A stretch of 64,000 bases of DNA from assembly GCA_964035545.1 (NCBI GenBank), contig OZ037769.1, positions 15,034,633-15,098,632 of the forward strand. The letters are read 5' to 3'. Source of the stretch: Bugula neritina. Its lineage: Eukaryota > Animalia > Bryozoa. The notes under the pieces were generated by a model. It saw only the letters and a program-made list of their open reading frames with translations, searched no databases and was not told where the DNA came from. Of the stretch, positions 2,780 through 63,532 are shown piece by piece. The position numbers and the translations under genes are program-made. Numbering within the stretch: position 1 is the first letter of the stretch; every line of letters begins with the position of its first letter.

Positions 2780-4929
2780 CTGCATATCAAGTCAAACAGC
2801 AAACAGAAGTTATACCCCAAGCTTCAAGTGAGCGCCCCAATTGTGTCCGATAATAGCATAAATAGGTTCAATGGAGAAACCAGTTTTCTTATCTCACTTT
2901 TGGTAACATTGAGAACAATGATAGTGAGGTATCACAATCCATGAGATTTGATTTATGCAAATCCAATGTTCATAATGTAGCTTTAAATGATTCGAAAACC
3001 TTTTATGAAAAGAGTGAGATCGTTTATATATGTTGCTTTCGGCAAATTTTTCCAGCAGTTACATAAACAGTTAAATGAACCTTACTCAGAGTTTAATAAA
3101 ATTCACACTTAAGTTATTGTGAAACAGTTGAGGAAGATGATAAATATGCAGATTATAGAGTTTTCTCCTCTTTAGACTTGAATGCTTATTATGATGTAGT
3201 GAGACAAACCTATGATGAAGCTGTAATTACCGCTTTTTATAGAAGTAAGTTAGAGCCAGTAGAGTATGACATTAAGTTTACATGCATCTCTGCTAAGCAA
3301 ATGCCACACGATTCAAGTAACTGTGAAATTTTAAAGGAACAAATTTATTTATGTAAGGAATTATCTGCTTAGAAATAATTTAATATAGCAAGGAAAGTTC
3401 ATGTAGATCTAAGAAATTTAATGTTTAATATGTAAACCTCATCTCAAGCTCGAGTTAGCAATTTAAATTTACCTGCTAGCCACGGAAATAGTTCAACTGT
3501 TTTGTCTGGCATCAATAATGCTTATGCAGCGCAGGATTGGCTAGGGCGAGGCATTGTTTGTGATGTAGCAAGTGTTTCATTTGGTAAGGCTTTGCAGCGT
3601 AAACAAATACCAACTGATGACAACTTGAATAAATATCCTGTAGATAATAATGAGTTAGTAAGTTATTCCTATCTAGCAAATAATAGTTTAAACAAATTCC
3701 AGTATCTACGTCATGCAACTCCATCTAGAGATTTTACCAGCAAAATATTATCTATAGTTTAGGCATATGAGAGGTATGAACCTCCACTCATTAAATTTTT
3801 GCTGCGTGAAGCACAAAGCAGCTTAACAATGGGCCTGTAAATCGAGAATATGCTTACAACTCTAAATACAAAATGTTCTTCATACCAACATTTAGTGGCA
3901 TACGTCAAAAATGGTCCAGGTTTTGCGCATCCTGGAGGCGACATGCAGCCTTTAAGTTTCATTTAGATGAGCTTAAAGCAACAGCTCTTAGTAGCAGTCT
4001 TAGAGGTGCAGCATTTGACTGCATAAAATCCATATATTTACACCACTCTTATGAGCCACAGTGGGATAAGCTGGAAAGAAAGTATAGTGACTTGAGTTCT
4101 TGTGTGCAAAATTTATATGGGGAGTTGAGCAGATCATCACCAGTGTTGGGTGAGGACTACAGAACGATAGTTCACAGTGTAGGAGATGAGTTAACTGCTG
4201 TCAACATTAAAGGCAGCGAATGGGTTTCCCATAAAGCTAGTGAACTTCAAGTACAAGGCAATGTTGAAGCTTGTAAGAACTTAGAAGTTTTACAAGAAAT
4301 ACTGCCTGAGCACTATCTATAACAAAGTCACAGTGTGAGTGGGCTTGGTGACAGTAGTGAAGTTAATCACTCAGTGTGTGGCGCAAGCTCCAGCCAACTA
4401 TCTGGATCTCAGTATAGTATTTTGCAGATGAAACAATACAAAGCAAAGATGATACTGAGCATCTGACAACGTTGTTGCTGCAAACTTCAGATTGTTCAGC
4501 AGATGAGCACGATGACGACAACCAAACCCTCATTTGTTCTACAGTCGAAATAGACGAGTCCAACAAACTTTTGAAGTATAAAAAATATACTGCCAAAGCT
4601 GTTAATTATTTTTAGAAAAGCAAAAAATTCCAAGAGGACCAAGAAGAAACTTGAAAGAAGTCACTCCTCAAGATCCACACCAAAAAATGGTCTTTACAAA
4701 TCTAGTGCTTGATAAATCTCAAGCAAGTACTGTGAGGCATTTTGTCGAGGCTATAAACGAAAATAAATATATACAAGCAGACATAAATGTATTACGAGAA
4801 GTTGAGCATCAACTTAGAATTAGACCATATGGTGTCCGCTTCTTATTAGCTGTGTCATCTGTAATTTATTCGTGTAGTAATAAAAACAATTCAATGAAAG
4901 CAAAACATTTTATATATAACTTGAGGTAA
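2780..4929 (+). pseudogene. Decayed intronless coding region of unknown family
   Basis: ORF pieces 3178-3372, 3502-3762 and 4651-4929 share one frame broken by scattered stops; 3873-4322 is frameshifted. Composition is coding-like but I recognise no motif. Confidence 0.5.
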
Positions 4930-9100: not shown

Positions 9101-11687
9101 TATAGTCTTTAGCAGATAAGCTACAAGCTAACCTGAGGCGATTGGCTAACTGCCTTACAAGCATTCGGATTCCCTACCGGGTTTCCTACCAGCTTGTACG
9201 GCTTGGATACTGGCTATTGCTAGAGTGAAAGTAAAAGTAAAGACTGCACGAGGGGACTCTTACGCAGACTGTCGAGTAAGTAGGACCTTACGTTACTTTT
9301 TTATATGACTATAGGAATATAATAATTTCCTTAAGCTTTAAGATGCAGTACACAAATTCATTATATACTCTGGGTAAACATTACTTGAATTTAGTCGTTG
9401 TAAAAATATTGGGTTAACCAAGTTAGTTATATTGAGAATGTAGAAGTAGCAAGAGTAATATCAGCCTATTATATAGAATATTTTATTCACTTCATTAATC
9501 TCTACAGCTCTGTTGTCAGCTCCGGTCTCAGAACTTTTTTGTGAAAGCTCTAACTCTTTTGGTTTATCTGAATATTCTTTTTCTTTATAACAAAACGCAA
9601 AAGAAGCAGCTAAGTTATAGTAAAAAAAATTATGTATCATGAAGTGATTAAACACAGTTTTTTCAAACAATTTTTTAACGTTAAAAAACCAACAATGGTA
9701 AAAAATATAATGCATTAAAAATGTACTTGAAAAAAAATACAATTATGTCAAAAGTAGCTGCTTAAATTGTACACATTTCATACATTAAAACACTTAAGGA
9801 ATTTATAAAGTTACCTGAGTCATTGTCAGAAGATAGTTCTACATACAAAATGCCAGTAAGAGTGTTGATCAAAGTAAAAGTGGACATAATTCCCATAGCA
9901 TAGGAATATCCAAATCTATTCAACAAATACTGTGATATCAGTGGCCATAGCACTATTCCAAGGTAAGCTCCTAGCATTGCTGAGGAGAAAGCAACATATT
10001 TGAATCGCTCAAAGTGAAATGTCAGTATGACTGAACTTGCATTGTAACAGAAGGACACCCCAAGTCCTACAAAAGGCAAATCGTCAAATACAAAACACAA
10101 TACGAGTGCTTACAAAATGGAACAAAAATTATTACATGCAGATTTTTTCTATAAATTTCCATATCCGGAAGTCTAAAATTTCTCATTATCCAAGATTCGA
10201 AGGTTGAGTTGAAAATGGAAAAACAGTTGAGTAGAATTTTTAAGCATGCATTGTCAACATGAGACTTTAAGTCACCACACACGCATACAAAATGAAGTAT
10301 TTTCAAAAAGATTTCAAATCTTAAGAAATACTGTCTTTTGTATAACAAAACAATTAAAATATGCTAATGCGATCTGCACAAAAAATGATAACTGGTAGCA
10401 AAAGTATTATCATGCAAGATTAATAAATAGTGTTTCTATACCTGCAAGAACACTGTACAGAATGACAGCATGCCATAACTGTCTAGACAGTATTGATAAA
10501 GCAACTCCAAGTAGAATACAGGTTCCTCCAGTTATCTGGGTAACTCTACAGCCAAACTTCTTTATCATGACAGAAGCCAAAGGACCTGAAATGTTACCAA
10601 TTTTGTTGAAAGATATATTGTCAATTATTTGAAATCAACATCTACTAAAATGATGATTAGTTAAAAAGTTAATTTACAGAATGGTGATGCAATATAATCC
10701 AGGGCTGCTTACTAAACATCAGAAGTATTCCAACATGTGTGGCTCCAGCCAGACTTCCTTTCTGAAGGTCAATGTTAAAGAACTGCTGATGAGCTATAGT
10801 CAAGTTACCAGCAATGCCGTAACTCATCCCAATATGAGTGAAATGTGACAGAAATGATGCAATACTTATGACCCATGCATAGCCTTTGTCTTTCTCAAGA
10901 TTGGACTTAGTGCAGAATCGAAGCATGTTGACTGTTCTAAAACTATATTTAAACTCATATGCAGTTATAAACCTGAAATAATTTGATATTTAATTTGCAA
11001 CAAGTGGCTTCATATACAATATACATATACATATACAAGCAAAATTAACTTTTAAAGATTGAAAAATAGCTTTTGTTAATGGTAATTGTATCAGTTGACT
11101 AATAATTTTCACTATGGCTAAAGACTGAGTTGCACAATAAAATGGTAGTCCGTTTGAATATAAAGACAAAACAGTTTAAACTAGATGCGAAGTAAATCAG
11201 TAGCTTTTAGTTCTAAATCACATTATATTCTCACACTTGACTGCCAAACTATCTAATAACCAATAATATAATAAATAGACTCATAGCAACAATAATTATA
11301 AACGGCCTAAAAGCTATTATGGGACATAAATCACCATTTAGTTTTAATTTCATGCTGCAAACTTTAAGCTAGTTATAGTGCCTTTTATTATATTAACTAA
11401 TATAGCCCTGATATTAGGTCATCATAGACATTGATAATATTGCTATTATATATGGAACAAATATTTTGCCACTTGCATTAGAGTTATAATATGTATTATA
11501 CTTCTCATGTTAAAAATCCACACATATTATTGCATCATGGTAAAATTAAACTATTTTAATTTGCCAACAACAAAATTTATCTTATCGGATTTTAAAAGCA
11601 TTAGTTTTGATTCCTAAAATATCATAGGCAGGGCAACTTTTTTGCAGCAGCACTTATTGCAGCCAATTTTTAGAGCTTCTAACCATG

Positions 11688-15582: not shown

Positions 15583-18291
15583 TACTTTACCTAATAAAGT
15601 AATAAATAACAATGTTTCTCGTATACCTATTTATAATCAAATTACTAGCTCGTAAAGATATATTTAAATTAATCGAAGAGAAACACGGGCGACAAATGAG
15701 ATTATCAGCAAGACGTTACGAATCACTCAAGATTAAATGAACAAAGATCAAAGCTGACATAAAGTATATTCTAATTTGCAAAAGAGAATCTTTATCTCCT
15801 ACATTTTCTCAAGTGAAATTGTCTATTCCTGGTAAGAACTACAAATTAAAAGCTAAAATTTCGAAACTAATTATGGAACAAGAATTAAAGAACAAACACT
15901 ACCATGCAGAAAAAGAAGGTACAACAATCTATCACTGAAGTCAAGCAATATCTTCAAAAGAAATCAAGTTTACTTTTTTATCTAGTCCTTATAAGTAGAA
16001 TAACCTCTCGTATTTCAAAGGAACGCAAATTTATTCATTGCAAACATGACCGAAAAATTAAACAACTTCGAAACTGCATTCAAGACCCTAAAGCTCAAGA
16101 ATTAGACACTATGAAAAGCCTACACAATTTCTCTTCAGTTCAACTTACAAATCAGCAACAACAAGCTATTGCCAGAGGATTAGATGTACACATTCCTACA
16201 AAAACCAACAATATTCATATTAAATCACAACTCGAATCTTTCTACCAACAAATTTCCTCAAATCAACATCAAGTATCTGAAGATAAGCTTGAAGTAATTA
16301 AAGGTAAACTCTTAGACACGTACTCCAAATTTATAAAGATTAAGATGCCAAAATATTTTGATGATGCTCTAAAGAAATTGAAAAATAATAAGGATATCTC
16401 ATTAATTAAACAAGACAAAGGAAAAGGTACTGTTGTCATGAATAAGAAGGATTACATCAACAAATGTTTAGAAATACTAAATACACCAAAATTTTCAATA
16501 TGTTCCACAGATCCAACAAAAACTATTGAAAATCGAATACAATTAGAATTGCGTATAGTATCAAAAAACATTTTTCTGACACTGACTATAAAAGGATATA
16601 TCCAACAGGTTCAGCACCTGGGAAATTTTACGGGATGGCCAAAATACACAAACTCAAACAAGGAGATGGTATAGAGAAGCTACAAATGCGACCAATAATT
16701 TCTAACATAGGCACTGCATCATACCAACTTGCGAAATACCTGGCCAAAATGCTAAAACCACTTAGTGAATCTGAAAGTAATATCGAATCAACCGATAGTT
16801 TTCTTACATATATACGGCAACTTCATATTCCAGCAAACCATCAACTGATATCATTTGATGTTGTTTCCCTCTTTACTTCTGTACCACTTGACTACACGAT
16901 TTCAGCAATCATAAATGATATTTATGAGAAACAACAAATCCAAACAACTATACCAAAGAAGAAAATGATAAACTTACTCAACCTTTGTACAAAACAAGTT
17001 CACTTTACTTTCAACGACATCATTTATACACAGACGGATGGTGTTGCTATGGGATCTCCTCTAGGACCAATAATTGCGAATATATTCATGACAAAACTAG
17101 AACAGAAAGTAATACTAAAATTGAATTCAATGTCACCTTGGGTGAGATACATAGATGACACATTTGCAACAATAGACCCTGATTATATTAACACATCACT
17201 CAACACACTTAATAATTTTCATCCTAACATAAAATTTACACACGAACTAGAAACCAATAAATCACTTTCTTTTCTGGATGTTACTGTTTTGCGACACAAT
17301 AGCTCAGTGGAAACTACAGTATTCCGCAAACCAACACATAACGATACATACTTACATTGGAACTCTTTCTCACTAAAAACGTGGAAGCTAAGCACACTCA
17401 AGTCACTAGTATTAAGGGCTAATAAAATATGTTCTACTCCAGCACTTAAGACCCAAGAACTAAACTATATTCGAAATGTTTTTGAACATAAAAATGGTTA
17501 CCCTAAATATGTAATAGAGAAAACTATTAACAACATTGGTGACGGACTACTCAGTGAAAAAGACAACAGGAAACACATTTTACTTCAGCTGCCTTATAAA
17601 GGAGTAACAGGAGAAAAACTAATCCGCTCCCTCAATAAATTAATTACAGACTTTTTTTCAAATGAACTCAATGCCCGTATTTTATTTAAAGGAACCCCCT
17701 TAAGTTCACATTTTAATCTCAAAGATAAAACCAATAAAGAACACATTCACAACCTAGTCTACTAAATAACCTGCCCTGAAGCTACCTGTCAACAAACATA
17801 TGTAGGCGAAACCGGACGTCGCCTATCACACAGGATACATGAACACTGCAATGACATCAATTCCAAAATTTATCAACACATCTCTACCACTAATCATGGA
17901 AACATATCAATAGACAATGTAACAGTTTTAAATCATTCATTTAAAGGAATCCACCATCGAAAAGTAGCCGAAGCTCTCTACATTAAACAAATAAAACCGC
18001 AACTCAATAAACAAAATTACTCCATACCACTAAAACTATATCAATAGCTCCACACTACTCAACTCTCACATAGTTTCACTAATTCTTGCTGTTTTTATAT
18101 TTGGATATCTATTTTTTTTGTCAACTCTAATTTATTTTTTATGCAAAAAAACCAGTATAATTTTTGACCTGCGTAATATATAAAATAAGATTATCTCCTT
18201 TAAGTTTCAATAATTTACAATAACTGTCACTCTCTATTCTTTGTGTCATGCATAACGTCTAATGTAACATAATAATTTTTGAATTTCATTC

Positions 18292-19112: not shown

Positions 19113-42177
<23,065 letters not shown>

Positions 42178-43967: not shown

Positions 43968-47967
<4,000 letters not shown>

Positions 47968-50117: not shown

Positions 50118-53100
50118 ATGTCAAGTTACAGAACCATCTTAATTGTTTTGGGAGTTGTTCTCAGTGCTGCTTTGGGCTGCCAGGGCAAACAAATTTGTGC
50201 GCCAGAGAAGTTTGAATCGGACTTTGTTTCCAAGGCTGAAATTAAATTTTTTGGGGAAGATTTTGCAATGATTGTGAGTGGAAAGACAGCTGTTGACTAC
50301 GGGAGTGGGGCATCCGCAACAATGATAAAAAATGTCTCAATGCCATTTGTTGGCGAACTCTTTGATGGTTACTCCTTTTTGCTAACAGAGGTAAAGTAAT
50401 AGAGGCAGTTATATTGTTTATCAGATTAGCCTTCATGTTGTTTGTACTCTTGATTAAATTTACATGTTTTTAACAGTCTTCCCTCCATTTATCCTGCACT
50501 CCAAAACATGACTTTGCATAAGAATTTTGACCATAAAGCAATCTGATTTGAATATAAGTAATAATTATTTGCAAGCAAATAACAAGTGAATGTGAAGCTT
50601 CTTGATTTATTATATTCATTCAATATTGAGTTATTAGAACATTGATATTGATATTGACAAATCTCACCTGTTTTAGAAAGTATTTAATGTAATTTGCTGC
50701 ATTTTAAAAATCATATTACATATAAATTGTATATTACAAAGAGATTAGATCATAACATACGAAACTTAATCTTAGTGGTGATAATGGTTGGAATAAAAAA
50801 AGGTTTTCAAAATATAAACTGATTATATAAGTAAGAAATAATCGCTGAAATACGACGGTGGTTCAAAAAGTAACGCCTGTTGTGTAAGATCAGAGAATTT
50901 TTATTTTCTGAATACTTAAACTATATATCAAAATGATCAGCAACAACTTAGGAACACACTCTATTTCTCAATATGGTCTCCTCCATTGTCCACAGCTGCT
51001 GTCCATCGTTTTATGAGAGCATGTATTCCTGCCTCGTAAAATGAGGATGGTTGTGAGCTTCTCAGCATGCATGCAGAAGATGAGACATTTTTGCAAAGGA
51101 TGATCACTGGTGACGAAACTTGGGTTTATCATTATGAGCCAGAAAGCAAAAGAAGGTCAATGGAATGGCAACATGCAGACTCACCCAGAAAGAAGAAATT
51201 CAAATCTCAGCCATCCGCTGGCAAGGTGATGGCTACTGTGTTTTGGGATTATCAGGGTGTGATACTGATTGACTTTATGGCCAAAAGCACTACCATAAAT
51301 TCTGAAGCCTACATTGAGACTCTAAGGAAGTTGAAAACCAGACTTAAGCGTTGCAGACCAAATGTCAACGTGGCTAACGTGCTCCTTCAGCACGACAATG
51401 CCCGCCCCCACACGAGTTTGAGAACAAGAGAGGAAATCACCCGTCATGGGTGGACTACATTGCCTCATCCACCATACAGCCCTGACTTGGCTCCATCAGA
51501 CTTTCATTTGTTTGGTCCGATGAAGGAAAGACTTAGAGGTCAGCAATTCTCTACTGACGAAGAAGTTAAAACGGCTGTACGGTCTTGGCTGCGCTCACAA
51601 CCATCCTCCTTTTACGAGGCAGGAATACATGCTCTCATAAAACGATAGACAGCAGCTGTGGACAATGGAGGAGACCATATTGAAAAATGGAGTGTGTTCC
51701 TAAGTTGTTGCTGATCATTTTGATATATAGTTTAAGTATTCAGAAAATAAAAATTATCTGATCTTACACAACAGGCGTTACTTTTTGAACCACCCTCGTA
51801 ACATGTCATAATTTTAAACTTTTCTCTATTGCAGTCAGCCACGTATTTATCTAACACAGTACAAAAATTCTGCATGAGGTTTCCAGCAGTTGACCTATTG
51901 AAGCTTCAGCAGCCATGTTCTGAAAGTAGTAAGTTAAGTTCAGTTGGGTACCTTGAAAAATGATTATATATGTTTCAGTATTTGTACAAATACCGAAACA
52001 TATATATTAATACGAGAAGTCTCTTATATAATATTACCTAAAAATTTTGTGCATGCAAAGCTACCATTGGCATTTTTAGTTAAATAATGAACTATAAAAA
52101 TAATTTATACATTGTATAAACTGTAAATCAAACAATTTTTTAAATAACGCAAATTATGCATGTTTTTGTCTAATAATCTAATTTTCAAAGTTAGCAGTTT
52201 TATTATTGAAAAAAGTTTTTAAACAAAAAATATATAATTATATTAAAAGCACATTCCTAGCTATTTTTTTATTGTCATATAGGCTTCAGGTTTTTTCTAA
52301 CATTCTGCATTGTATTCAACCCAAATACAAAGATAATGTTTTTAAGCTGAGCATATATGCTATATGACGCATTGAAATATAACTATACAGGATAAAGCAA
52401 GAAACTGTTGAAAGTGGTTTGATTATTTTATTGAAAAGTTGAATTGATGTTTTTATTACTTGCAATAAACGTTCCAGGTTGGCTTACCCATACGGCATCC
52501 TTTTTAATGGATTCACAGTGAATGGACAAGTACCTCAATCATAATAGTTCAGGTATTTTTAAGCATACTATCACCGTGAGGAAAGACGACTTTGCCGTTT
52601 TCTTTGAAGACTTTGTAATAGACATCATGGATTGTAAGTATAGATAAATATTAAACAGATACAGTGTTTTGTACACTTAATCGCAAAGGAATGCTTTGTT
52701 ATATAAATCATACTTTGAACTTCCGGTTTGTTGATAGCCACATGTATTACTGAAGCAGAAGTTTAATTTCAATTTGAGTCATGCAGTGATGATTTTGTAT
52801 TATTTAATGATAATACATGTAATTGATTAAACATAAACTGCAAAAGTATACAAGTATTTTGAATTAACAAAATTGAAAATATTAAGCAGGAAAATTATTA
52901 ATTATAGAGTAATGATGACATTACTTATACGTGCATGTATTTTAGTTTATATTTGAGTATATAAATGTATACTGTTCATGCACATGTGAATAGTATACAT
53001 TTATATACTCAAATATATAACTTAAAATACATTTTAAATATATTTTCTTATTTTAAATATATAGTGTCTGCTTGACATTAAAACAAATATGTAAGTTAAA

Positions 53101-58580: not shown

Positions 58581-61500
58581 TTAAAAGTGATTGGTTAGGA
58601 TCTTAATGAGATGCAATGAGCCAGAGAGTTGTAGAAGGTGTGTCTTCTTTCGTTTGATAACAGATTCTGTATTGACACCAAGGAGCTTGTTAAAGTTTTC
58701 AAGAGATCTTTGACAATGTTCAAGAGACTGAGTCACATAACCAGTGTGTAGAAGTAGAAGGGATATAGACAGGTGAACTTCACCAAGAAAAAAAACTGCA
58801 TTTCTGGTTTTGGGAAGGGACTGATACAGACAGAGAGCAGAGTACAACCAACACCAACTCTTCTTGTATGATGACATCAACATGTAACATTTACCCATCT
58901 GGTGGTAGTTGTCAGCCTGTTCCATGCTATGTTCAGAGGTTTTAGAAATAGAAATCTGCAGAAACTGAGCAGCTCTTCTGTAGTTTGATGATCTGATGTA
59001 ATCTGCTGATATTCTGTTGAGGACTTTGGACAGACATGGATTACTCAATACAGGAGTATAGCCAAGGGACAGACAGTTTTCATATCTGTTGTATTCTAAA
59101 CATATGTCTATAATAGAAGAGGTTGCAGCTGCAAGATCAGGATGTGCTGAACCTTCCCCATAAACAGCTTTCATTATCTCCACTGACTTGATGTAATATT
59201 CTAATGCTGTGTTATAGTTACCTAGTTCTTTGTGTACATCACCAATATTACAGTAGCTGATAGCTATATTAGAGTGGTTGGTATGTTCGCCATAAACAGA
59301 TTTCATCATCTCCATTGACTTGGTGCAATACTCTAGTGCTATGTCATAGTTACCTAGCTGTTTGTGTACCTGACCAACACTATCATAGCTGGCAGCTATG
59401 TTAGAGTGGTTTGTATGTTCACCATAAACAGCCTTCATCATCTCCATTGACTTGGTGTAATACTCTAGTGCTGTGTCGAAGTTACCTTGTTGATTGTGTA
59501 CATCACCAATATTATTATAGCTGATAGCTATACTATAGTGGGTTGTATGTTCACCATAAACAGCTTTCATCATGTCCAGTGACTTGGTGCAATATTTTAG
59601 TGCTTTGTCATAGTCACCTAGTTGATTGTGTGCAGTACCAATATTACTATAGCTGATAGCTATACTATAGTGGTTTGTATGTTCACCATAAACAGCTTTC
59701 TCCATTTCTATTGACTTGGTGTAATATTCTAGTGCTTTGTTATGATTACCTAGAAATTTGTATTGATCACCAATATTATTATAGCTCATAGCTATACTAG
59801 AGTGATTTGTATGTTCACCATAAACAGTTTTTAGCATTGCCAGTGCCTTAATGTGATATGTCAAGGCTGTCTTATTTTCATTTTTATGTGTGTGCACTTT
59901 TCCTAAATAGTCTAAAATTTGTGATTCCACCATCATGTTTTCTTTTGGATCATTTCCGAAATTTTTTTCACACAACCTTTTGTGAATAGAAAGAGACTGC
60001 ATCAGGTAAGACTTAGCTTCATCTAGATTTGATAAGGACATACTAGTCTGACCCAGTGAGTGGAAGAGATCAGATGTGAATTGAAACATATATAGCATAT
60101 ACTCTGGCAATTGAGTAGAAGTTTCTACCTTTCTTAGTATGTACTCAGTGAGAGATATGTCCTCGTCTATCATGAGCTCTTCTTCTAGTTTAGACTTTAT
60201 CTGAATGAGAATATTCCTAGCAGACTTATATTTGCTTAGACCGTCCATACAGTAAGCTATCATCTTTTTACATTGCACTATTTGGAACCAAGCTGTTTCA
60301 TAACTGCTTAACCAACTCAGGTAGTCAATTGCACTACTATGGTGGTCACTAGTGAATAGCGAATAACAACATATTTCCAAATACTTTTTCTCTCGAGAGT
60401 CTGACTTGTTTGTCTTGTATTTTGATCGTATACATTTCACAAACTCTTCATACCCTACATTTCTGATATCAACACCCGAACCAGCACATATGTATTTAAA
60501 CACTGTGTTTAAGTCTTCAACATAACACAATACTTCACAGATTGTCATGTAATCTTGTTTATCTGTCACCAAGTCAGTGGGAATCACTGATTTCAGGTAT
60601 TCACTCACACGCTTCTCTTTTAATGTTGCCAGTAGCTTATTTCCTTTGTGCATACTCGATATGAGGGATTGCTTTATTGGAATGAGTATTGAGCCAAATG
60701 TCACAAATATATTCCTTGGTATATAGTGATGTTTGCTCTTTTCATGGGCACTTTTCATATTAGCAGTGGGGGTACCTAGCAAAATAATTTCAGCTTTTTG
60801 AGTTTTTATAGTAATGTAAGCCATAGTTCTCATGTATATTGAGAGTCCCAAGGTAATGTGAAGGTATTTCAGGCTTTCTTTAGAAATTACTCCAGTCTGA
60901 TAAAGTGCCTCATAAACCTTCCACGGAAAGTTTAGTTGAAAACAAAGGGCAAGGTTTAGATTAGTAGCCAATAGAGTGATGTAACGGAAAATATCTTCTT
61001 TTACTCTCACATCTTCACCAACAGCAATTTTAAATTCAAACTCAGGGAGAAAATCATATTTTTGTAAATCTAGAGAAAGTCTCTCCAACCTCTTCTGTTT
61101 GATTTTGTGATCATTCTGAGCTGTAACTTTCTCATATGTAGCTATTTCTTTCATAAATCTGTCATGTAACTGTGCCCCATCATCAGAACAGTATATCAAC
61201 TGTGATGTCATGAGCAGATCTGAAAGACTGGCTAGTTCTTCAAATGGTGACATCACTTCCTCTTTGTACAGTTTTACTGCTTGTTCAACTGTAAAGGTGA
61301 GACATCTACCCAATCCATTTCCTGTTGGTATGTTACCAGCATTTGGTGTGAGACCATCTATTCTATATCCTACTGGACAGATCTCACTGAGACAGTCAGG
61401 AGAGTTTTCAACTTTAATGTTGAAGGTTTTCAATGGAGATTCGTTGAGGTTAGTTATTCTAAAATATGTGTCAACGGCCAGTTGAGTGAAATAATCTCTC

Positions 61501-63364
61501 TCAATCTCATTTTCAATGAGAAATGCATATTCAAGGTCGGAATATGGAGTTGCCTCACCTCGAGCTACTGAGCCCAAAGCAATTACAGCAAAATCACAGG
61601 GTGGTTCTACTTGACACCCTTTAAGCAAATCTGTACTTTTTTGAATTACTGAACCAGAAAATTCTACAAATTCTTTGGAACACTCCTCACTTCTAGCAAA
61701 TACATCATTAGACAACTGAGTAGATATTTCTAAATTAGCATCACTAAACACATTGTCTATATCTAACAACTCTACCTCACCATTCAAACTGTCAAAGTTA
61801 ATGAATGTATTCTCTCGATACTCTTTAAGTCGTTGTTTATGGTGTTTTGTCAATTCTTGATGTTCTGTAAAAGTGAGTGGATGTTTTCCTTTGTACCATT
61901 TGTGTTCTATTTCATAGACTTTTTGGTATCTCTGACTGTTTTGTGAATCTATGGTTTGCAGATGATTTGCTATTCCATGACTCTACATCACAAAAAAAGG
62001 CAATTTCTTATACTTATAATTTCTTACTGCTTTATAGGATAATCAATATATTCTTATTAGCTATATAGCTTATACCAAAATTGTTTAAACAATTTTAATG
62101 CAATGTAGATCAATACCTAGCACTGAAAATGCATTCCATGTGAGTGAAATATTATGATTGTAAACTTTTTGACAGTCCACTAAAATTGTTCATATAACGC
62201 CTTTTATCGTGTGTATAGCCTGCACCACACCTCTAATAGTTGTTAGACTTGCACTTATTTTGATCAAATTGACCATTCGCCATCAGATCAGTGTAAGCTG
62301 TACAAATATTTAGTTGTAGCTCTGAAGCCACTTAGTTGTTCAGTCAACACTACTCTTCACAATTATTATGTAATCATCATCACTGAATCTGTATGAAGCC
62401 ACACAGGGTTGATGGGAGCAGAAAGTGTGATCAATGGTACAACTAAATATGTTCAAGCAAAATTTAATTTACATAAGAATTATGGAACCATTGGCAGTTC
62501 TTCACCTAACAACATTATTCGTTCACATGTGTACTAATGATGATCACAAAGCTTTATAGGAAGCTAGGATAGAATGAAAACGCAAGTGCAACCCTGCATT
62601 TGGGTCATTTCAAATAGTGCTTCCGAGTTGGATGCCATTTATGTATTTTACTATAGAAATTAATTTAAATCAATTACTCTTTATAATTGGCGCACAAATA
62701 AATATTCTTTAAAAAAAATTTATTTTCTTCTTTTAATTGCTTTTATCTATAAGTCAATAACCTTAATTATATCATATTGTTGTAATGTGATGTAATGTGC
62801 AGTTGTCTTCTTTGCATTTAAAACAAATATCCATAAATTTAATAGGATTTACTTTATACGCCTATAAGTGAGGGGAAACTTCAAAATGAAATAATTTTCT
62901 TGTATAAAAAATTTTTAAATTAAATTTAATTCTTCAAGTAGTGCATCTAGTTTAACAAATGCATTGAAGTTGATTCAATTCTAAATCAACATGTGTCTTC
63001 AAGCAGGAATAAACTTGAAAGTTTAAAATTAGTATATTTCTTAAACAAGCTATATATATAAAGCTGTCTACAATGAAGATATTTCAGTGTAATAATCTAA
63101 TGAAGATAAGAATGTTATTCATCATGTTATTAATCCAATACTTCACTAATCATAATATTCATTTGTTTATGTCTACAGATAATCGTAACTATAACATTCA
63201 TTTACTGCAGTTCCTGTTCTAAGTCTCAACAATTCTAAAAAGTATTTACAGTAATTATATTACGTATATTTTACCTTGACATAGTCAACCCAGTTTCCTG
63301 TTTTTTCTGCTTTTCCCAAGTGTTTTATTAAAAGTAACTCTAATTCAGCAATGTACTCCTCCAT
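58581..63364 (-). CDS. GlnD/GlnE-like (DUF294-type) nucleotidyltransferase plus helical domain plus TPR array, ~1163 aa, two coding exons
   Basis: Exon 1 is 63364-63275 (MEEYIAELE...GNWVDYVK|gtaaaa). Exon 2 is 61982-58581, stop-free after a polypyrimidine-tag acceptor; both junctions are phase 0. NTase motif FAVIALGSVARGEATPYSDLEYAFL at ~61512-61604; 44-aa TPR units at ~59150-59830. Confidence 0.88.
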
Positions 63365-63532
63365 GATTCACCATGTTATGTTGTATCTGCATGAGTATCG
63401 GATAATAAAGGTGAGTACAGTTTATAAGTCAAAATTTATCATATAGTATAATATGCAGTATTGAGCGTGAATGTTTCAATTTATATCAGTTCAATAGAGA
63501 AATATACATCTGCGAGCATTGACTATAATAAA

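Follow-up and report, generated by a model that had tools for sequence, protein, structure and literature searches.

Spliced bryozoan genes joining a DrrA/SidM-like nucleotidyltransferase to diversifying TPR arrays: candidate cytosolic enzymes for the capture and modification of variable proteins

Introduction

Animal AMPylation is attributed in reviews to FICD and SelO, while pol-β-type AMPylases, such as GS-ATase and SidM, are described as only bacterial (PMC12409994). Among the latter, Legionella DrrA/SidM is a secreted effector with a documented acidic triad (PMC7815794). TPRs choose the substrate of the human AMPylase FICD (PMC8065156). The fusion of a DUF294 nucleotidyltransferase domain with TPRs is already described in bacteria, in NEX2-family proteins, which are putatively secreted and mostly carry an F-box or OTU domain at their N-terminus (PMC4209131). 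An enzyme-first, repeats-last order is also found in those NLRs of fungi and invertebrates that carry highly conserved TPRs, long units that are internally conserved, vary in number and show positive selection on the concave face (PMC4986451). No description of an animal DUF294-TPR family was found in the literature.

Here, a gene is analyzed within a stretch of 64,000 nucleotides of Bugula neritina DNA (the window; GCA_964035545.1, contig OZ037769.1, positions 15,034,633 to 15,098,632). A preliminary description, made from the sequence alone, had read it as a host gene in which ligand-sensing TPRs gate a GlnD/DUF294-like nucleotidyltransferase, an interpretation that is partly supported by the present results.

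Host-encoded, spliced and multi-copy, the bryozoan gene nonetheless resembles the bacterial effector DrrA/SidM (PDB 6YX5; Pfam SidM_N) across all 450 residues of the module, from the N-terminal helices to the HEPN-like domain, and shares its acidic triad and a near-identical GS...TxYSDxD/E motif. On the contrary, identity is 13–16%, the second acid in the bryozoan protein is Glu, and a TPR array is present, with no Rab GEF or PI4P-binding domain detected by Pfam in the window protein. NEX2 and its endosymbiont kin have a DUF294 domain homologous to that of the bryozoan protein, in which the invariant residues are the same; TPR arrays follow whose long units vary in number, and the genes have likewise expanded in tandem in a lineage-specific way. 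The bryozoan protein differs in the lack of Pfam matches to F-box or OTU and in units of 44 residues, versus 42 in the one bacterial protein checked. Since these nearest bacterial kin show the same DUF294-TPR order, the fusion itself is not new. GlnE, GlnD and CBS-DUF294 regulators of free-living bacteria likewise combine a pol-β core with a HEPN-like helical domain, while HD, ACT and CBS domains and a nitrogen-regulation context are absent from the bryozoan protein. FICD/HYPE is similar as an animal AMPylase with substrate-selecting TPRs, but its fold is unrelated, and it is an ER membrane protein encoded by a single conserved gene. Finally, cGAS-like receptors, OAS and CD-NTases belong to the same superfamily, are multi-copy in invertebrates and include some TPR fusions, although they form a separate branch.

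Gene Structure and Host Origin

The gene, with all features on the minus strand, comprises two coding exons of 30 and 1133 codons. Coding exon 1 (63275..63364) starts with an ATG and ends at a GT donor; the exon as a whole begins at about 63386, behind an upstream acceptor, and a 5' untranslated exon lies further upstream. Because of an in-frame TGA at 63370-63368, the ATG at 63364 is the first start. The phase-0 GT-AG intron (61983..63274, 1292 nt) keeps its position across subfamilies, including one with only 42% identity. Coding exon 2 (58581..61982; 1133 codons plus stop) is open from 61982 to 58584, the in-frame stop being the acceptor AG itself. A TTG start at 61853, already doubted in the preliminary description in favor of the ATG exon, is rejected because the frame stays open up to the acceptor and homology continues upstream. 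Exon 1 was found in 17 copies upstream of paralogues, and the NCBI Bugula neritina model P0003 opens with it.

The splice joint 61982/63275 appears in contigs from three RNA-type runs, whereas a DNA run lacks it. The expected junction is thus observed in RNA, in contigs that are 92–96% like the window, which reflects paralogues or alleles and is not proof for the window copy. Neither signal peptide, transmembrane segment nor P-loop/Walker A was found in the protein.

About 60 loci exist in the genome (57 full-domain matches plus broken copies), sitting in tandem clusters with pseudogenes on nine large scaffolds; flanks of 1.5 kb were read at 30 loci, a third subfamily being known from coordinates only. 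That the gene is a bacterial contaminant, or was recently inserted from an endosymbiont, might be suspected from the mainly bacterial distribution of DUF294 and from the one long exon. Nonetheless, the intron is spliced and kept across subfamilies, the copies occupy clusters on large scaffolds, orthologous clades exist in Watersipora, GC is host-like and identity to any bacterial protein is only 23–37%. The splice joint, together with the bryozoan clade (SH-aLRT 100), rules this explanation out, and the locus is a spliced host gene of the bryozoan, as previously proposed.

The Enzyme Module

Profile searches were run exon by exon, the structure model covers the N-terminal 450 residues, and residue numbers count within exon 2. 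The N-terminal helices and the pol-β nucleotidyltransferase core (61116..61982, residues 1-289) are DrrA/GlnE-like. Within them, the GS-x9-SDxE signature (61530..61574), noted earlier as intact in the 3.4-kb exon, reads GS-x9-SDLE, with G137-S138 as the glycine-serine pair and D149 and E151 as predicted metal ligands (DrrA D110 and D112). D209 (61356..61358), in the GYRIDG motif, is the likely third ligand and would correspond to DrrA D150. The pol-β motif hG[GS]-x9-13-[DE]h[DE]h and third acid are therefore present at positions 99–100% conserved, the triad itself (D149/E151/D209) being 99% conserved and intact in all groups among 144 homologues. A HEPN-like, DUF294_C-type helical domain follows (60624..61115, residues 290-453), with invariant K328, R333, R385 and Y389; it is supported by structure here and by Pfam in homologues, the window protein giving no direct Pfam match to DUF294_C.

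The 450-residue model (pLDDT 92) finds its best fold match in the Legionella AMPylase DrrA/SidM (Z 26.6 over 325 residues; Foldseek E 2e-8), followed by GlnE (Z 20.1 and 18.6), with full-length chains of all other families below Z 8.2 and HEPN chains matching residues 295-450 at Z 7–8. At profile level, DUF294 (PF03445) reaches 31.2 bits versus a cut-off of 21 with partial coverage (columns 16-91 of 138), CBS-DUF294 matches at 95% over 231 columns, and SidM_N gives 17.9 bits, below its cut-off of 27. GlnD and GlnE profile matches are confined to the motif (probability 29% and 4%), their full-length NCBIfam equivalogs score only 14–17 bits versus cut-offs of 519–799, and PADLOC returned motif-level matches only. 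A pol-β nucleotidyltransferase of DUF294 lineage with an intact triad is thus supported; of the GlnD/DUF294-like assignment, the fold and lineage stand, while the closest solved structure is DrrA/SidM and then GlnE, not GlnD, orthology to which is rejected. An active HEPN RNase is also rejected, the motif R-x4-6-H (RxxxxH) being absent from the window protein; the nearest columns carry His in only 25–45% of homologues.

The window protein has no Pfam match to NACHT/NB-ARC and no Walker A, as stated in the preliminary description, and NLR identity is consequently rejected, the effector being a nucleotidyltransferase. Neither is there a Pfam match to Mab-21/OAS, and CD-NTase CdnE appears only at E 0.9 in Foldseek and is absent from the VIA top 50; with similarity at noise level, identity as a cGLR or OAS is rejected too. 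A functionally cGLR- or OAS-like enzyme, activated by a ligand to make a cyclic or linear oligonucleotide signal, would be compatible with the pol-β fold, with the capacity of some NTase-plus-helical-domain enzymes to make oligonucleotides (Hailong HalB, Z 6.0) and with the cGAS-TPR fusions of oysters (PMC8195603). Such second-messenger synthesis is less likely, indeed improbable, considering that the top matches are protein NMP-transferases scoring far above HalB and that all close solved relatives modify proteins.

TPR Array and Selection

The succession of GYRIDG, a helical region and TPRs noted earlier is confirmed and refined. Between enzyme and regular TPRs lies a degenerate helical-repeat linker of about 265 residues (59829..60623, residues 454-718), modeled with low confidence, along which dN/dS climbs from 0.3 to 0.6–0.7 toward the TPRs. 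Five regular KLC/LGN-like units of 44 residues (132 bp) follow (59169..59828), with hypervariable groove positions, and C-terminal degenerate helical repeats, conserved in the subfamily, form a cap (58584..59168). Unit number differs among paralogues, whose open frames of 1045, 1089, 1133, 1177 and 1221 codons advance in steps of 44.

Purifying selection acts on the enzyme (dN/dS 0.21–0.25 in subfamily A, 0.13–0.31 in subfamily B). On the contrary, diversity in groove codons is 0.43 at non-degenerate sites versus 0.11 at four-fold sites (ratio 4.2, bootstrap 2.1–11), minimum changes per site are 11.5 versus 3.4 (p 5e-5), both over 67 TPR units, and the split-half pN/pS is 2.4. These are pairwise or parsimony per-column counts on related, possibly recombining repeats (first five units, 15 genes), and they support diversifying selection on the grooves. 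Sequence patterns show a repertoire under renewal, in which genes duplicate or decay into pseudogenes, repeats come and go, and groove residues are substituted.

A functionless or selfish expansion by unequal crossing-over or as a mobile unit, with groove variation due to relaxed constraint or gene conversion, would account for several broken copies in a transposon-rich genome. It is very unlikely given an enzyme dN/dS of 0.2, the lack of a transposase domain in the gene and a groove whose variation is four times that of silent sites, more than relaxation alone could produce. Non-immune roles, with paralogues specialized on different partners in development, physiology or the management of resident symbionts, agree with the common TPR-directed modification of self proteins (OGT, FICD) and with the transcripts detected in ordinary RNA samples. 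They are nonetheless unlikely, since housekeeping regulators do not typically form birth-and-death clusters, change in repeat number, diversify in the groove alone or expand independently in unrelated eukaryotes, and the distribution is patchy.

Proposed Function

The preferred reading, to which we give a probability of roughly 45%, is a cytosolic "catch and tag" defense enzyme, in which AMPylation follows the capture of a variable protein by the TPRs. The variable protein, probably foreign or non-self, would be held in the TPR groove by an extended peptide; the DrrA-like domain would bind ATP and Mg2+ with D149/E151/D209 and with basic residues from the HEPN-like part; and, by analogy with DrrA and GlnE, a side-chain hydroxyl, most likely that of a tyrosine, would receive AMP or another NMP. 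Either the captured protein or a direct partner of it would be modified in this way and so disabled or marked, and the about 60 paralogues would form a repertoire of specificities. Catalysis, donor nucleotide, target and defensive role are here inferred, protein AMPylation in particular being borrowed from relatives at 10–16% identity. To our knowledge, CBS-DUF294 proteins, the nearest free-living sister family, have no known substrate.

The main rival is a gated receptor, as proposed in the preliminary description, in which the solenoid holds the enzyme off until a groove ligand triggers AMPylation of one conserved host target, for instance a small GTPase; the cell would thereby be killed or alerted, either in infection or in colony allorecognition. 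A groove that diversifies while the enzyme stays conserved fits it, and uniform conservation of the enzyme is no less expected with a single fixed host target; furthermore, allosteric activation is required for DrrA itself (PMC7815794), the effector-first order and TPR evolution are like those of fungal NLRs (PMC4986451), and allo-incompatibility is known in bryozoans (PMC8195603). It appears doubtful because neither a NOD switch nor another known gating module was found in the protein, and the F-box ahead of the same DUF294-TPR order in endosymbiont relatives suggests that the TPRs recruit substrates, capture fitting at least as well as gating.

Together with the catch-and-tag reading, we tentatively consider a new intracellular immune or allorecognition class outside NLRs and cGAS-like receptors, with DrrA-type protein AMPylation as output. 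Intracellular symbionts would have the enzyme in common with animals and may have been its source; a somatically fixed, fast-evolving TPR repertoire would provide the aim; and expansion would have occurred independently in amphioxus, in bryozoans and in one or more further eukaryote lineages. This broader proposal is somewhat short of an even chance. Were a member active, animals would have a third kind of AMPylase, and the Legionella effector fold its first counterpart encoded by a host. A conserved enzyme with a diversifying groove would also permit a direct test of non-self recognition without a NOD switch in colonial invertebrates, and an animal family offers a handle on the function of DUF294 and NEX2-like symbiont proteins.

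Relatives and Direction of Transfer

Bacterial relatives, detected by alignment search (a single-protein scan of bacterial genomes gave none), are almost only intracellular symbionts: Neochlamydia (NEX2), Rickettsiales, Holosporaceae and Amoebophilaceae. A quick tree rooted with CBS-DUF294 places animals within symbionts (SH-aLRT 95), but donor direction is left open because the AU test does not reject symbiont monophyly or sister clades (p 0.79). A viral origin is rejected, no relative being found in viral contigs. An amphioxus "TPRP-like" gene is described as transferred (PMC13350694); no link between it and the DUF294-TPR family could be established. Among eukaryotes, relatives occur in amphioxus, Owenia and others, with a patchy distribution and independent expansions in unrelated lineages, and the animal clade is separate from the chlamydial one in the tree.

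Gene structure and splicing

The studied minus-strand gene comprises exon 1 (63364-63275), of 30 codons and ending at a GT donor, and exon 2 (61982-58584), an open frame of 1133 codons whose upstream limit is an in-frame stop formed by the acceptor AG itself. Both join in phase across a GT..AG intron (61983-63274, minus strand), and the exon-1 ATG is the first start because an in-frame TGA lies two codons 5' of it. The intron is precisely absent from contigs of three RNA-type runs and is not skipped in the DNA run. At 92-96% likeness to the window, these contigs derive from paralogues or alleles; we infer splicing of the studied copy itself from these transcripts together with its own intact splice sites. 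The intron position is shared with a subfamily of just 42% identity, exon 1 has 17 copies upstream of paralogues, and a paralogue modelled by NCBI in Bugula neritina begins with the same exon, which suggests that the host is B. neritina or closely related to it. The preliminary description, a spliced host gene with an ATG exon joined at 63275/61982, is thus borne out.

Upstream of exon 1, one RNA contig diverges from the genomic sequence at an AG acceptor (63386-63388, minus strand); its 31 unaligned letters would belong either to a spliced leader or to an untranslated 5' exon located outside the window. In addition, an out-of-frame ATG in good context (63345-63374, minus strand) starts a 9-codon uORF that overlaps the main start and could damp translation; this ATG is present in paralogue L019 and absent from the distant subfamily.

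Fold and active site of the enzyme module

Database searches were run exon by exon, and the fold model covers exon-2 residues 1-453 (pLDDT 92, pTM 0.92). Against 48,161 solved chains, its top match was Legionella DrrA (Z 26.6 over 325 residues, spanning model positions 1-457), followed by two GlnE domains (Z 20.1 and 18.6), DrrA fragments (Z 13.0 and 9.2) and isolated HEPN chains (Z 7-8 over residues 295-450); Foldseek concurs with the DrrA/GlnE ranking, in agreement with a pol-beta-type fold. Of the residues D110, D112 and D150 used by DrrA (PMC7815794), the first two align with D149 and E151 here, and the third probably corresponds to D209. Across 144 homologues, conservation is 96-99% for D149, E151 and D209 as well as for K328, R333, R385 and Y389 in the helical domain.

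In sequence comparisons, CBS-DUF294 is the closest free-living family (probability 95%), while GlnD and GlnE matches are confined to the motif; thus, of the GlnD/DUF294-like assignment proposed earlier, the DUF294 lineage stands and the GlnD likeness does not extend beyond the motif. The protein belongs to the pol-beta superfamily and the DUF294 lineage. An RxxxxH motif, a P-loop, a signal peptide and a TM segment were looked for in it, and none was found. GlnD or GlnE (motif-only match), an NLR (no P-loop), an active HEPN RNase (no RxxxxH), a cGLR and, despite the best fold match, DrrA proper were all ruled out, consistent with the anticipated place outside the NLR and cGLR classes.

Since the close relatives of solved structure all transfer NMP to a protein, protein AMPylation would by analogy be the most likely chemistry. 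Synthesis of a nucleotide signal, a poorer fit than either substrate capture by the TPRs or a gated receptor, is quite unlikely.

Relatives in animals and symbionts

Homologues form 1043 matching clusters at 50% identity. Named eukaryotic members belong to Bugula, Watersipora, Branchiostoma and Owenia; one Atlas cluster is mostly chordate and another, shorter, is partly ciliate. A eukaryote clade in ENA long-read assemblies holds >100 paralogues among the matches listed (67-77% identity, 965 hits overall); this clade (loci L032 and L077; proteins P0257-P0375) has undergone its own, much larger DUF294-TPR expansion, in which single megabase contigs bear many copies. Prokaryotes contribute 40 matching loci in 185,579 genomes, the named ones being almost all intracellular symbionts (Parachlamydiaceae, Rhabdochlamydiaceae, Rickettsiaceae, Holosporaceae, Amoebophilaceae and related Cytophagales). 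Neochlamydia S13 carries tandem F-box-DUF294-TPR genes, the NEX2 family, for which the same DUF294-TPR order was already described, F-box or OTU being a feature of the symbiont kin (PMC4209131).

The Owenia fusiformis protein P0193 combines an OTU protease, two DUF294 domains and TPRs, an order shared by ten NEX2 members (PMC4209131). Two or three tandem nucleotidyltransferase domains occur in proteins P0097, P0102, P0114 and P0150 (amphioxus clade) and P0180 and P0194 (symbionts).

Trees recovered a bryozoan clade (SH-aLRT 100) and a single eukaryote side (91-98) opposite the symbionts. A quick tree with a distant CBS-DUF294 root nested animals inside symbionts; symbiont monophyly was not rejected by the AU test (p-AU 0.79). 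On this evidence, the family has a long history in animals, which share it with symbionts. The horizontal origin suggested previously is plausible, with transfer possible in either direction. The animal proteins bear the automatic label 'Protein-PII uridylyltransferase N-terminal domain-containing', no paper on the animal family was found in the non-subscription literature searched, and reviews of the pol-beta-type AMPylase fold name bacterial enzymes only (PMC12409994).

Selection and proposed mode of action

The family is real and transcribed, with 66-69 genomic matches on nine scaffolds, 57 spanning the full domain and mostly in tandem clusters (sequence read at 30 loci). Identities fall into classes of 81-89%, 37-44% and about 30%, and several copies are frameshifted or stop-carrying, two of them just outside the window. 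As the preliminary description held, a TPR array lies behind the helical region: a stretch of degenerate helical repeats, about 265 residues long, leads into five regular 44-aa units (132 bp, 84% matches), whose closest natural counterparts are LGN and kinesin light chain; a helical cap follows. Open frames in the nearest class measure 1045, 1089, 1133, 1177 and 1221 codons, i.e. 44-codon steps.

Among 15 close paralogues, dN/dS was 0.21-0.25 in the enzyme, rising to 0.30 in the first linker and to 0.56-0.64 nearer the TPRs; the enzyme of a second subfamily gave 0.13-0.31. The variable positions of 67 TPR units are 2, 5, 6, 9, 12 and 13, which we take to line the ligand groove. Non-degenerate diversity in groove codons was 0.43, versus 0.11 at four-fold and 0.09 at other non-degenerate sites (groove versus four-fold ratio 4.2, bootstrap 2.1-11; minimum changes per site 11.5 versus 3.4, p 5e-5), these being diversity and change counts rather than a codon model, for the first five units of related, possibly recombining sequences. 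The groove set was fixed after viewing the entropy table, but a split-half test gave a pN/pS of 2.4 (minimum 1.9). Repeat likeness was 0.87 within and 0.86 between genes, as expected with shuffling. Fungal NLRs resemble this pattern: their TPRs, too, are under selection on this concave face (PMC4986451).

Considering (i) the conserved enzyme, (ii) the diversifying groove, (iii) the birth-and-death clusters and (iv) the repeated independent expansions, the selection and copy-number pattern would point to conflict with variable partners. Non-immune regulation is unlikely and functionless expansion very unlikely, both fitting less well than substrate capture or a gated receptor. Substrate capture is favoured, at a probability of roughly 0.45: the TPRs would capture a protein that the DrrA-like enzyme would then AMPylate. 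This preference arises because symbiont kin pair the same module with F-box or OTU, where repeats choose targets, and because the TPRs of FICD pick its substrate (PMC8065156). The leading alternative, though a doubtful one, is a gated receptor with a fixed host target, which accounts for the selection data just as well and for which the allosteric activation of DrrA offers a precedent. By inference, the protein would work like DrrA aimed by NLR-like TPRs.

Genomic neighbourhood

Two adjacent copies that lie a short way outside the window, at scaffold positions G000:C5:15101512-15106777 and 15116204-15117585 (loci L018, L020 and L023), are broken, with stops, a frameshift and one copy split into pieces. 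Within the window, ordinary neighbours are a DUF1759 fragment (3873-4322), an MFS transporter exon (9762-10100), a retroelement RT (15904-17765), a gypsy-like LTR retrotransposon in several frames (30291-34164), a non-LTR RT (44810-45796) and a mariner transposase fragment (51067-51648).
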